Positions 4,062-16,019 of a stretch of 16,019 nt of DNA are shown here, piece by piece. The stretch covers positions 1 to 16,019 of the forward strand of contig BAAFSQ010000227.1 of assembly GCA_054661495.1 (NCBI GenBank). The letters are read 5' to 3'. Under the pieces are notes generated by a model. The model was not told the DNA's origin and did no database searches. It saw only the letters and a list, made by a program, of their open reading frames with translations. The position numbers and the translations under genes were made by a program. This DNA comes from Zygophlyctis sp. KS116. Its lineage: Eukaryota > Fungi > Chytridiomycota. The number at the start of each line of letters is the position of its first letter. Position 1 is the first letter of the stretch.

Positions 4062-6825
4062 ATGAATTATATCGGAAACATTATAAAAACATTTAATCAG
4101 AAATATCCATTTGTTATCAAAGAACAGGAAGAAATTCAGGATTATTCTAGTATTTGGAGACTTTTCAAGGGGAAAAAGGAAGATTTGGACATTTCTGTTT
4201 TTATTCTAGATTTAAACAAGTTTCCAGACAAGAGAGAGCTGGGAAGAAATGCTCTGAAAAGAATAAAAACTACAAGACATCCCTCTATAATCAAATTTAT
4301 AGATGGCGTAGAAACAGAATCTCAAATTATAATTGCTACAGAGCAAATTCAAATGTTATCAGAGAAATTAAAGGAAAATAATTCCAATTTTATTGTATGG
4401 GGACTATGGAAAATTGCAAATGCTTGCAAGTTTTTAAACGATCAAGGAATAGTTCATGGAAATTTGAGGATTTCATCTATTTTTTATGTGTCATCAGGTG
4501 AATGGAAGTTGAATGGATTGGAATATGCTTCATTGGTGAATGAGGACAATTCAGTCTTTAGTCTATACAGGAAAAATGACTTGTTTTTACCACAAGGTAA
4601 TTCTAGATTTTAATTCTAGAAATATTTTCTCGCTCAAGGAAAATGACGGCTACTGATATTGATGGTTATGGGTTTGGAGTTTTGATTTATCAGATTTACA
4701 ATGGAAACTTTACAAGACAGGAGGATTTGATAAATAAAGGGAAAATTCCAATTGTATTTACTATAAAATCTAATATTATAGAATTTGTTTGAACAATACA
4801 AGGCTTTTGTTCAAATAAATACTAGAAATAAATTGGATTTTGCTACTTTTATAGAAACTGCATCTAGAAAAGGAGGTTTTTTTGATAATGCAATCATCTG
4901 GACTAGTCTTTTTTTAGAGGAAATTAATATAAAGGAAGTTAGAGAAAAGGAAGAGTTTATAAGGTATTCAAAGTTTAGTTGAAAAAAAAGGACAATTTCA
5001 GAGTCTTTGAATGAATTTCCTATCGAATTTTCAAAATTCAAGGTTTTACCAGAACTTTTAAAAGCTGTGGAATACGGTGGTGCTGGGGCCAATGCTTTAA
5101 AGTCTACTCTCAAATTAGGAGCAAAGTTGAATCATGAAGAGTTTAATCATTTGATTCTTCCGACTGTTATTAATTTGTTTTCAGTTCAGGTTTGATAATC
5201 AAAAACTCAATTCTAGGACAACAATATTAAAAGTTGTTTATATGAAAATCTGGAGTCTATAATTTCATTTATTCCAGATAAAATAGTCAATGACAAACTG
5301 TTTCCTAGTCTTTCCTCTGGATTTCAAGATGAAAATCCAATAATTCGTGAACAGGCTTTAAAATCTGTTTTGCATGTTGCTCCAAAGGTATTTTTAACAT
5401 GATTAAGTCCAGCTGAACGATCGAAATATGAATACCGAACTTTTTAGGTATTTATCAAAGTTGCAAATAGACCCACAGCCGGGTATTCGTGCGGTATTCA
5501 CCAATTATAATTAATATATAGAATGCTACTATTTGCATTGGGAAATTAAGCAAACTATTTAATGCATCGGTAATATCTTACCGTATTTTTACATTTAGAC
5601 ACAAAAAAGGGTTCTTTGTCAAACATTTCTGCGGGCTCTGGGCGATCCATTTCCACCAGCTAAAATCGCTGGTCTCTTGGCATTTTCAGGTATTTATTTT
5701 TCCGAATTAATTGTAGCAACTACGGATTACTATGAGCCTGCTGACATATCATCAAAGATTTTACCTACATTTTCTGGGCTTTTGATTGATCAAGAAAAGT
5801 AATATTTCCAACAAGTAACAAATAAGGACAGTACGCGATCAGGCTTTCAAGAATATCTATACATTTCTCAAAATTCTTCAAAAGAATTCAGATTCAATGG
5901 TAAACTAAGTTATTGGAAAATTAACTTTTAGCCCGAGGTTAAGCGAGAGCCTCCTAAACAAGCTCAAGAGCTGAGAAATGCACCAAATTCAGAAGGGAAT
6001 GGCTGGGGAGACTGGGCTCTATCTACTGTTTCTGCTAAGCTAGCTGGTGCAGTCTTAGACATAGAGCATACGCAATCAAACCCACCCTCTATCGCCGCTA
6101 GAGAAATTCCTCCTCTTGGCTTACAACCAACTTCATCATTGCCAGGCCAAAACGTTGCCAAAATTAATACTATTGATAGTCATAAATTGGCGACAAATAA
6201 TGATGTGGTAAGATCCAATTCATTTGGCGGCACTTCCCCTAACATGGATATCTCTCAAAATCAATATTCTTCTTTCAATTCAGCCGCAAAGCCGCTTGTA
6301 TTGTCATCCAAGTCAAAAAATGGAGCAGATCTTGGATGGGGTGATTGGGGAAATGATCTTTTGGATGACGCAGATAAAGTAAAACCAAATGGATCATCTG
6401 GATTAGGGCCAATTCTTCAGCCAGATCGATCCAAACTTTCGAACATTTCCAAAAAGCCAAGTAGCTTAGCTACTAGTAAGGGGAGTCCGATGACTGATTG
6501 GTCTGCCGGAAATGAAGACTGGGGATGGGCAGAACCGACAGTGCCTAAGCAGGAGCAGAGGAAGCCAAGTATCAAGTCATTAAATCCAGGACCTTCAAAT
6601 ATTGTCACAGATGACTGGAATTCTGGGCCAGGAGATGATTGGAATTCATGGGCAGAGCCTACGCCATCCCCATCCCAGAAAGTAGGAACCAATGATTGGG
6701 GATCCTCCTGGTCGCCGAGTACGAATACAAGCATTTCTATTGAAAAACTTAAAGGAGAAAACAGAAAGCAAAGGTTGCAGGAGAGTAGAGAGAAAAATTC
6801 ACAATCAAGAGGGAAAAATTATTAA
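4062..6825 (+). CDS. CEX1: SCY1-like pseudokinase with HEAT repeats (SCYL1/Cex1), 829 aa spliced, 10 introns
   Basis: Introns: 4597-4619, 4754-4781, 4964-4990, 5190-5216, 5388-5412, 5494-5521, 5570-5598, 5690-5716, 5799-5826, 5900-5931. Spliced length is 2490 nt in one frame. Motifs: KRIKTTRHPSIIKF, HGNL, GEWKLNG, PQE, DGYGFG.LIY.IYNG, DPQPGIRANATICIGKL, RALGDPFPPA, IDQEKTVRDQAF, and a Trp/Asp-rich disordered tail. Confidence 0.92.
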
Positions 6826-9020
6826 TTATTATCGATTACATCAATGCTTTGACTATTGTCTAATTTTTCATTGAGCTCTAGATTTTGACCGGTTAATCTA
6901 AACATCAGAGAGGATCTCTCTTGCTTATTGATTAAGATCGACACAGAGACCGCTGCACGCCACATGGGAAGATTCACAGGCAGTTTTACTGTCCCGGTAT
7001 AATCAGGCTCATCTACAGGATTAAATACGAGTAAATAGCTGCATATAGCTAAATATTAAGAAAAAAATCGCATACCTATTTTTTCTAAAACATCTTGGAA
7101 CGAGATTGAGAAAGATGAGAATTTTGGATATGCATTGGTTAAAATAACCACTAAATCAGCCAAAGAGCAGCTAATTCGTTTATGATCCGAGAGATATGGC
7201 GCCATTGTCAATAAACCTTCATAATTAAGTCTATAATTAAAATAATCCGCACTAAAATCAATTTTATAGAAATATACATCTTTGATTCCATTGAATGACG
7301 AGTGAATGCTTTTATTCCAGTGTTGACAATCTTTGAAATAATGAATAATTCTAATTTACCTTAAGCTTTCTAGAGTTTCTAGCTAAAAGAATTTTTTTGA
7401 CTGATTCCCCAACAAAATAAATAGACTTATTACCGTCAGCATCATTTCTAACGACAAACTGATCAAGAGGGAGCCCATTCTCAAGCCCATACACTTTTCT
7501 ATATTTTAAAAGCGTTGAAAAAAATACCTCGCATTAACAATAAGTTCATGATCTGGGTTGAGAAAAATAAAGGGCTTTTCTTCTCTACTTGTCCAAGCGA
7601 CATGAGTCTGTTTTGGTTTATCATCGTTCATTTTTGGTCGCTTAGACTCATGTTCTGCTTCATCATCTCCAATTTCGACACTTTGAGGCTCTTCATCTTT
7701 AGCTACTGATACATCTTTAACTACTTGTTTAGGAAGTGGTGCTATCTTTTCCAACACAGAAACAAAAAAACCACCAGTATTTTGTAGATGTGGATATATT
7801 CGAAGACATTTTGACATTCCAAAAGACATAATATCTTTGGGGGGAAACATTGATTCCACAATATATTTCTTCTTTTCTTCCGGTACTTCATCAAAGGAGT
7901 TATAAACAGCACCATCACGATCCTGCATCATCCATGTAGTTATTCCAGGATTTCTTTTAAGTTCGGAAAGTTGATCGGAAACATCAACTAAACGCATAGC
8001 CCCTTCCGCTCTTCTAATAATTTCAGCAACTACGGCTTCGTTCTCAATTGGATTCATTGAGCATGTACTGTAAACAATTGTTCCTCCTACTTTAAGCATT
8101 TCGCAGCCTCTTTGAAGAATCATAGCTTGTAGTTTATGGAGCCCATTCCCATTTTGAACAGCCCAAGTTCTCCCTAAAAATATAACTATCTTTACACTTA
8201 CAAAGATTTAAATTTTTTCTAAAAGTCCCATCACCCTTCATATTTACTTTAAACTTAAACTTACTGAACAAGGCACATCAGCCAAAATACGATCGAATTT
8301 AAGTGGGTTATACTTTTCTTCGCCTTCGCATTCGATATAAAGTTGAGGAAATGACTGTGCATCATGATTTGTAACCATCAAGCAAGGACTCTGCAATCGT
8401 TTAGCCTGCTTAACCAACATATAACTTCTATTAGGATTTGCATCATTAGCAATCACAACACCTCCTTAGTATTACTGCAAGTAAATATTACCCGCCATTG
8501 GATCGTCATTAGTAAGAGCCTCTAGTATCTGAGCAGTCTTACTTCCTGGTGCCGCACACATGTCCAAAACATAGAAACCTGGTTTAATATCCATCAAAAG
8601 AACAGGGATCATTGACACTGCCTCTTGTCGAGATATATTCCCCACTTCTGTCTCTGCAACTAAAAACCGATGAAACTTTGATAATCCTGGGGATTTCCGA
8701 AGGACCGATCGAGGACAATCAATCTCCCAGCCTAGATCTGATGGATACCAATTGATCGTTGATGGCTTAATCTCTTCCAACTGGTTAAAGAATGAATGCA
8801 TCATTGAATCTCTCTGCTCAATCGCTATGTCTCTTCCTCCAGTAAATCTAAAAGTTGTTGGCAAAGTCTTTTTCAAGACTGCTAGCAATTCATCAAATTC
8901 AGGATCGGAAATCAACTTTTGCATCTTATAATAGTTTTCAAAGTCTTGATTTTCTAAATTAAAAGTATATTCAGCTCTTGTCTTCTCAGCTCTTGGATTC
9001 TTCTTTTGATGATTCTTCAT
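6822..9020 (-). CDS. NCL1: tRNA (cytosine-5)-methyltransferase Ncl1/Trm4 (NSUN2), 667 aa spliced, 7 introns
   Basis: Introns: 8465-8491, 8236-8264, 8174-8201, 7499-7527, 7331-7359, 7252-7277, 7049-7075. Motifs: [38 protein letters not shown]|GDGT (rejoined by splicing), [33 protein letters not shown] at 9020 (the track used GTG 9065). Ends SIDVIDNN* with TAA at 6824-6822. Confidence 0.95.
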
Positions 9021-15229: not shown

Positions 15230-15240
15230 CCGAGATTTAA

Positions 15241-16019
15241 ATGTTTTTCTTGATGTTTGCTACCGTTTTGGCAATGTCCCAAGGCAATGAGTCATTATTT
15301 TGGGGAACATATAGACCAAACTTGTACTTTGGCACAACAACCAGGTCGCCGCAGAGCCTGATGACTGGCTTAATGTGGTTCCAAAATGAGAACTTTGCAG
15401 GTAATTAATAGATTTTATAATTAACAGATATGAGACATGAATGCAATCAGGACAATGATATTATTTATCAATGGTAGAATGAATTTAAATTGAATTTTAG
15501 GAATGCACACGACGGAAGAACTTTTGGATCGCAGACAATTCATGATAATCGTTTCAAGCTAAATCTCAAAACAGATTTTGTTAAAGTTGCTGGCGGTGAG
15601 AATGGAGGTAATTGGGCTTTAAGAGTTTCTGGAACTCCAGCGCCTAATGATATGATCAGTATTATTTTTTATGTTGGGACTGATGGGAATGGAGAGCTCA
15701 TGAATGTAGATAATAAGATTGTCGGAAAAACTCTTGAATTGGGTGATTTTTCAGTGGAATGGAATGAAAAGGATAATAATGAAAACGTGTTCTTGAGATC
15801 ACTAGAAATACCAAGGGGGAAATTATGGAAGATTAAATATTTGACGCAAAAGTTCATTTCTGAAAATGCCAATCAGGTATCAAAGCAGAAAAATCCTCAA
15901 ATTCAGGATATTTTAGCGGCTGGTACTATGACTAAATCTGATAAAGAATCTCACAACGTTCTTCTATTTCAAGGATTTTTTAAAAAAGATTTTCAGGTAT
16001 CTTGTTTTATTAATTCTAG
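15241..16019 (+). CDS. CWH41: Mannosyl-oligosaccharide glucosidase (ER glucosidase I, GH63), 5' partial
   Basis: [15 protein letters not shown] hydrophobic leader, then [53 protein letters not shown]. Introns: 15401-15427, 15474-15500 and probably 15997-16019. Runs off the window and is absent from the ORF track. Confidence 0.93.

Follow-up and report, generated by a model that had tools for sequence, protein, structure and literature searches.

Tightly packed housekeeping genes in an intron-rich chytrid, with promoters probably buried in neighbouring coding sequence

Organization of the locus

The window analyzed here covers positions 1-16019 of contig C227 (16,019 nucleotides, nt), from an assembly of Zygophlyctis sp. 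KS116 that amounts to 12.7 Mb in 1175 contigs. Its part from position 4062 onwards carries a series of housekeeping genes with hardly any DNA between them, and the subject of this work is the manner in which such closely packed genes are expressed. A previous reading, made from the sequence alone, had described the series as operon-like and had proposed that NTO1, NCL1 and CWH41 are expressed either from polycistronic RNA or from promoters buried in the exons of the upstream gene. The closest named fungal matches are chytrids, with 73% for the proteasome alpha-1 subunit and 80-82% for eRF1. In a quick one-gene tree, the clade lies on a long branch within a group of chytrids whose support is weak (81), and near relatives are represented by metagenome contigs alone. 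The genes and junctions are the following.

4062-6825, plus strand: SCY1/CEX1-like pseudokinase gene; gene model with 10 introns (23-32 nt) and a weak Pkinase match; convergent with NCL1
6822-6825: 4-nt overlap of the convergent SCY1 and NCL1 stop codons, from sequence and gene model
6822-9020, minus strand: NCL1/TRM4 tRNA m5C methyltransferase gene; Pfam RsmB/F methyltransferase; 7 introns, 667 amino acids
9017-9020, minus strand: NTO1/NCL1 stop/start overlap ATGA, formed by the NTO1 TGA (9019-9017) and the NCL1 ATG (9020-9018); lineage-specific
9017-11047, minus strand: gene for an NTO1/BRPF-like EPL1-PHD protein; Pfam PHD/zf-HC5HC2H; 7 introns, 613 amino acids
11048-11057, minus strand: SCL1-NTO1 spacer of 10 nt, with AATAAA at 11053-11048, directly before the NTO1 ATG
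11058-11821, minus strand: SCL1, proteasome alpha-1 subunit gene; Pfam proteasome alpha; one 29-nt intron (11214-11242), 244 amino acids
11064-11066, minus strand: SCL1 codon 243, GCG, whose CpG, about 18 nt upstream of the NTO1 ATG, is a candidate element of a buried promoter
11822-11889: putative bidirectional promoter of 68 nt, with TAGGGT (11831-11836), ACCTAG (11847-11852) and AGGCC (11865-11869)
11890-15229, plus strand: importin-beta family gene; Pfam IBN_N; 10 introns, 1021 amino acids
15230-15240, plus strand: importin-CWH41 spacer of 11 nt, with one CpG; a further ACGC lies at -38 within the last codons of the importin gene
15241-16019, plus strand: 5' part of CWH41, glucosidase I (GH63); GH63 matches in syntenic relatives; continues past the window end

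The importin-beta family gene may be importin-7/8-like. Every junction of the earlier description was verified in the sequence: the SCL1 stop (11060-11058) lies 10 nt from the NTO1 ATG (11047), NTO1 and NCL1 overlap (-4), 68 nt separate the divergent SCL1 and importin genes, and 11 nt separate the importin TAA (15227-15229) from the CWH41 ATG (15241). Intergenic DNA between 4062 and 16019 indeed totals 89 nt (10 + 68 + 11). The self-trained gene finder, in which gap length had a flat prior and overlaps were permitted, reproduces the gene ends and starts, except for the start of CWH41, where a downstream in-frame ATG (15361) is chosen. Genes were compared with databases one exon at a time. An artefact of start choice, which the sequence-only reading had also dismissed, was ruled out for the tight junctions by the conserved N-termini of orthologues: since relatives keep those of NTO1, NCL1 and CWH41, including the start at 15241, these starts are held to be correct. 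For CWH41, the N-terminus is conserved in relatives L020 and L021, and the gene of Gorgonomyces was matched by tblastn.

The RNA data consist of assembled contigs from one run (X1) of a freshwater metatranscriptome. The predicted 26-nt importin intron at 14026-14051 is spliced out in one RNA contig. L001 and L019 were considered as transcript contigs and rejected as DNA, as they retain introns.

Genome-wide compaction

The rest of the genome was sampled with 200 kb from three other contigs, about 2% of the total, using gene models from the self-trained finder. In this sample, 117 genes span 92% of the DNA and contain 3.3 introns per gene. The introns have a median length of 27 nt over the whole sample (range 23-33 nt), a GTA(A/T) donor, a TAG acceptor and, 7-9 nt upstream of their end, a patch rich in A. 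Outside the window, the median gap is 19.5 nt between convergent genes, 93 nt between tandem genes and 146 nt between divergent genes. The dependence of gap size on orientation suggests that each 5' end needs a space of its own, in keeping with one promoter per gene. An additive model of the flanks, with half a divergent gap plus half a convergent gap, puts the tandem median at 94 nt and the probability of tandem gaps of 16 nt or less at 8%; the observed proportion is 7.6% (5/66), with 2/66 gaps of 11 nt or less. Divergent gaps below 68 nt are found in 11/34 cases, the shortest being 23-35 nt, and convergent gaps of zero or less in 10/38. Same-strand neighbours make up 48% of the pairs (70/147, p = 0.62), and the mean strand run of 2.07 genes is that of random orientation.

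The three tandem gaps of the window belong to the tightest 3-8% of the distribution. Together they constitute a tail event, and a rough estimate based on about 3,300 tandem junctions is that 0.1-1.5 such runs are expected per genome. The locus is the tight tail of a genome-wide compaction and no special locus. The idea that it is distinctive for being operon-like was not borne out, the same compaction being found genome-wide, with no excess of same-strand neighbours.

At proteasome-subunit loci of the same genome (L007, L013, L015), tight tandem gaps are frequent (12, 27, 16 and 26 nt); the data suggest that housekeeping regions are the most compact. Two gaps of 14 and 18 nt on contig C2 were discarded as tandem gaps, since a single CSE1-like gene had been split by the gene finder. 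They were left out of the gap and CpG tests and kept in the hexamer and YAG lists. The splitting of this gene (C2:70297-74656, minus strand) suggests introns of an unusual kind, frameshifts or errors of assembly.

The very short spacers, which separate housekeeping genes of unrelated function, are similar to those of tunicate operons. They would fit a polycistronic precursor cut by spliced-leader (SL) trans-splicing, or cleaved and recapped, in the manner of nematode, tunicate and kinetoplastid operons. However, none of the 12 listed tight spacers, two of which are gene-finder splits, contains a YAG acceptor, and YAG is not enriched at positions -25 to -1 of ATGs (45% vs. 52% in the control zone). 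Moreover, one molecule cannot yield both mRNAs across the -4 overlap, genes are not clustered by strand, and the few RNA contigs show no loose ends, although this last argument is weak. Processing of a common precursor is regarded as very improbable.

Spacing in relatives

Relatives have about 72-78% nucleotide identity over the compared loci. The SCL1-NTO1 spacer measures 10, 11, 12, 12 and 22 nt across lineages. NTO1 and NCL1 overlap (-4) in this species and in a strain 97% identical to it, and their gap is +48 nt in L022 and +40 nt in L132; in a fourth lineage (L129-131), NCL1 is preceded by 73 nt or more of sequence that is not NTO1. The importin-CWH41 spacer is 11 nt here, 19 nt in L020 and 81 nt in L021, and the divergent spacer between SCL1 and the importin gene, of 68 nt here, reaches 71-263 nt in relatives. 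A convergent -4 overlap of the SCY1/NCL1 type is likewise present in L129. NCL1 has 7 introns here, and several are missing in some relatives (2 in L129).

Gorgonomyces haynaldii (GCA_025526955.1; L133:3722-10833) shares the order CWH41 <- importin <- -> SCL1 and has some short gaps nearby (20-63 nt). It differs in its importin-CWH41 and divergent gaps of 247 and 474 nt (vs. 11 and 68 nt), in its GC content of 46%, and in the gene after SCL1, which is a Porin_3 gene and not NTO1. This old microsynteny can serve as a reference for the extent of spacer erosion.

NTO1 stops several codons later here than in L022 and L132, which gives the ATGA overlap the appearance of an extension after stop loss. 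Gene order is old and spacing is labile; under translational coupling, a fixed spacing would be expected.

Promoter signals

In the genome sample, the motifs CGCGT, GCGTT, TAGGG, AACCCT, AACCTAG and TGTCCGA are enriched upstream of ATGs. CpG density peaks at positions -60 to -20 before the ATG, with 35-40 per kb vs. 18.5 in the bodies of coding sequences (CDS). TAGGGT, ACCTAG and AGGCC in the 68-nt spacer belong to the types enriched upstream of ATGs. The 194-nt divergent spacer before SCY1 (3868-4061) contains GAATTTAGGG, a motif that recurs at 11826-11835 within the 68-nt spacer. Where relatives have wider spacers, similar elements are found: AAACCCT, CGCG, ACGC and AATAAA in the 81-nt spacer before CWH41 in L021, CGCG and AATAAA in the 19-nt importin-CWH41 spacer of L020, and ACCTAG in the 48-nt NTO1-NCL1 spacer of L022. 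Judging from its motifs, the 81-nt spacer of L021 looks like an ordinary promoter with a poly(A) signal.

When a tandem gap is 30 nt or less, the promoter zone at -60 to -20 falls inside the upstream gene. At such junctions, the last 20 codons of the upstream gene contain 25 CpG vs. 13.2 expected, a number reached in none of 1000 synonymous resamplings, and the excess persists when the genes of the window are removed (p = 0.005). No excess is present at other gene ends, whether loose tandem (55 vs. 62 expected) or convergent (67 vs. 103). Codon 243 of SCL1 is GCG in 5/5 lineages that keep the neighbourhood, and no other of the 87 four-fold sites has an invariant G/C. The codon reads GCA in Gorgonomyces, where a 62-nt spacer separates SCL1 from its next gene, and GCT in L044, neither of which has NTO1 next to SCL1. 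L044 (1540-1623) is 99.7% identical to L125 up to the SCL1 stop, then unrelated and without NTO1. It may be an allele, a duplicate or paralogue, or an assembly chimera, and was given little weight.

Signals at the 3' end

AATAAA is the most enriched hexamer around stops in the genome sample (29 vs. 7.4 expected, p = 3e-10). It peaks between -10 and +15 of the stop and is present at 5/13 tight junctions, against 3% for windows in CDS. In each of the five lineages that have NTO1 next to SCL1, AATAAA is placed after the SCL1 stop and ahead of the NTO1 ATG, and the copy at 11053-11048 is, from its sequence and position, the probable poly(A) signal of SCL1. The hexamer also occurs in wider spacers, after the importin gene in L020 and L021 and between NTO1 and NCL1 in L132, and ATTAAA immediately precedes the importin stop in the window. 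Cleavage takes place about 20 nt downstream of AATAAA (PMC2803860); with the signal in the 10-nt spacer, the SCL1 mRNA would therefore end within the first codons of NTO1.

These features bear on a bicistronic mRNA of the green-algal type, in which the second open reading frame (ORF) is reached by leaky scanning. The short distance between ORFs and the gene order conserved in relatives would agree with it. However, leaky scanning requires a short, AUG-poor first ORF (PMC11892635), and the upstream ORFs measure 735, 1842 and 3066 nt vs. algal medians of 291-357 nt (PMC11892635). They contain 19, 53 and 82 internal AUGs, that is 26-29 per kb vs. 24 per kb genome-wide; there is no AUG depletion, and leaky scanning is contradicted by this average density. 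A poly(A) signal also follows SCL1. Of the modes of expression considered, this is the one given least credence.

Expression from buried promoters

The best explanation, with a probability of roughly 0.75, is that genome-wide compaction has acted on separately promoted genes, whose promoters are partly buried in the upstream gene and whose mRNAs overlap or read through. Introns shrank to about 27 nt, and spacers to about 10 nt 3' of a gene and about 70 nt 5' of it, as the 2% sample shows. With a tandem spacer worn down to less than about 30 nt, the downstream gene would have its promoter zone (-60 to -20) within the final codons of the gene before it, whose AATAAA and cleavage site would overlap the first codons of the downstream gene. 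NTO1, NCL1 and CWH41 would each be carried by their own capped mRNA, with a short leader, overlapping the upstream mRNA. Multigene read-through RNAs may arise as by-products of which the first ORF alone is translated, by analogy with Encephalitozoon. Comparison with relatives suggests that an earlier stop of NTO1 was lost and its frame prolonged across the spacer as far as the TGA of ATGA, a direction that is not formally rooted.

Thus, one half of the proposal made from the sequence gained support, and the other did not. Promoters buried in upstream exons are supported by the orientation-dependent gaps, the CpG excess in last codons, the motifs in the spacers of relatives and the conserved AATAAA after SCL1. 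The polycistronic, operon-like arrangement that had given the proposal its title is not supported, in view of the lack of same-strand excess, the lineage-specific ATGA, the long ORFs with normal AUG density and the missing splice acceptor in tight spacers. The locus is no evidence of fungal operons.

Several observations weigh against buried promoters. Full motifs of the spacer type are present at 3/10 tight and 32/49 loose junctions, and in 19% of CDS windows. For NTO1 and NCL1 there are isolated CpGs and no full motif within 80 nt, and in L132 the end of NTO1 and the NTO1-NCL1 spacer are without CpG. In this species, the NTO1 stop has neither AATAAA nor ATTAAA close to it. Five short contigs of the freshwater metatranscriptome were matched, none of which spans a junction. 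At another locus of the genome, TRP2 and TRP3 are neighbours on one strand. Finally, the class of tight junctions is small (n = 11), and it was drawn from self-made gene models on about 2% of the genome.

The low motif content of tight junctions, the L132 junction devoid of CpG, and the AT-richness of nearly all tight spacers would also fit loose, dispersed initiation from AT-rich spacers and open chromatin. In that case there would be no dedicated buried element, and the CpG excess would be partly incidental. The significance of this excess and the invariant GCG codon of SCL1 speak against such initiation, which appears unlikely. Overlapping monocistronic genes in the broad sense, with loose initiation included, are very probable.

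The scarcity of full promoter motifs, the missing poly(A) hexamer near the NTO1 stop and the ATGA overlap itself may alternatively point to a mixed situation, with most genes monocistronic and some tight pairs co-transcribed. The second ORF would then be translated by termination-reinitiation at ATGA or TAATG, or across spacers of about 10 nt. A further indication is a TRP2-like chorismate-binding gene located directly upstream, on the same strand, of a TRP3-like gene containing IGPS (C297:5167-7641, minus strand); this functionally linked pair is the best candidate for real co-expression. However, the ATGA overlap exists in 1/4 lineages, being absent from L022 (+48), L132 (+40) and L129-131 (at least 73 nt). 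Reinitiation after long ORFs normally requires a special RNA element, and the upstream ORFs are long (735-3066 nt). UGGGA is missing from the last 100 nt of these ORFs, and folding is not unusually stable (z of -0.85, -0.95 and +0.15). An effect of ORF length on downstream translation has been described (PMC11892635). The sequence-only reading had expected coupling to appear as peaks in the distribution of same-strand stop-to-start gaps; among the 66 modelled junctions outside the window (the 2% sample), no gap is of -4 and the two noted above are of 11 nt or less. The lack of a -4 gap among these 66 is compatible with such overlaps at 1-2% of junctions. After a stop loss, the A-rich start context would make TAATG and ATGA the likeliest new stops. 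The mixed situation is accordingly judged improbable. Slightly more doubtful is that the chytrid translates some long downstream ORFs from shared mRNAs by termination-reinitiation, with NTO1-NCL1 and TRP2-TRP3 as candidates for true coupled operons. A stop/restart of the viral type was rejected, as the overlap is not conserved, UGGGA is missing and the fold z-scores are about -1 to 0.

If the explanation by buried promoters is true, a packing similar to that of microsporidia has been reached by a chytrid clade that retained many introns, and promoters and poly(A) signals would have entered neighbouring coding sequence independently here. The orthologous spacers of 11-247 nt in relatives would provide a natural series for the entry of promoter elements into synonymous sites. 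No paper on such packing in chytrids was found in the literature searched.

Other features of the window

An intronless ORF of 332 amino acids at 1476-2474 (plus strand) has a higher GC content, and its upstream gap of 365 nt is larger than those of its neighbours. It has no Pfam match; by eye it resembles Crinkler-type proteins that have a C-terminal nuclease-like domain. An 18-nt overlap of convergent coding ends is predicted at 2930-2947, between a small plus-strand ORF (2591-2947) and a minus-strand coiled-coil gene (2930-3867).

Comparison with known systems

Overlapping or multigene transcription is known in the microsporidia Encephalitozoon cuniculi and Antonospora locustae (PMC2803860). 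In Encephalitozoon, rapid amplification of cDNA ends found a separate 5' end for each tested gene, with coexisting multigene read-through RNAs (PMC2803860). These microsporidia resemble the chytrid in having very short spacers, AATAAA near stops and short motifs just before the ATG (PMC2803860). Their head-to-head genes share about 35 nt (PMC2803860), and divergent spacers are likewise small here, down to 23-35 nt, which leaves no room for two separate upstream regions. Short spacers were found genome-wide, and promoter and poly(A) signals close to the ATG and the stop, as a statistical property and not gene by gene. The motifs differ, with a CCC/GGG triplet beside the ATG in microsporidia, whereas CGCG/GCGT and TAGGGY types are spread over -60 to -20 in the chytrid. 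Unlike microsporidia, the chytrid is intron-rich (3.3 per gene, about 27 nt) and has a 12.7-Mb assembly.

The chlorarachniophyte nucleomorph, an organellar relic of less than 1 Mb, has introns of 18-21 nt and dense, overlapping genes and transcripts. It resembles the chytrid by its many tiny introns in a dense set of genes, and differs in that the compaction described here is that of a full nuclear genome. Polycistronic loci of green algae likewise have short distances between ORFs and conserved colinear pairs (PMC7896298, PMC11892635). Their first ORF is short, AUG-poor and without a poly(A) signal (PMC7896298, PMC11892635), whereas here it is long, has a normal AUG density and, in SCL1, is followed by a conserved AATAAA. 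The locus departs from green-algal polycistrons in its first ORFs and poly(A) signals, and from SL operons in having no splice acceptor in tight spacers and no excess of same-strand runs. The overlapping and multigene transcription known from microsporidia would, by analogy, have its counterpart here in an intron-rich chytrid that uses other motifs.

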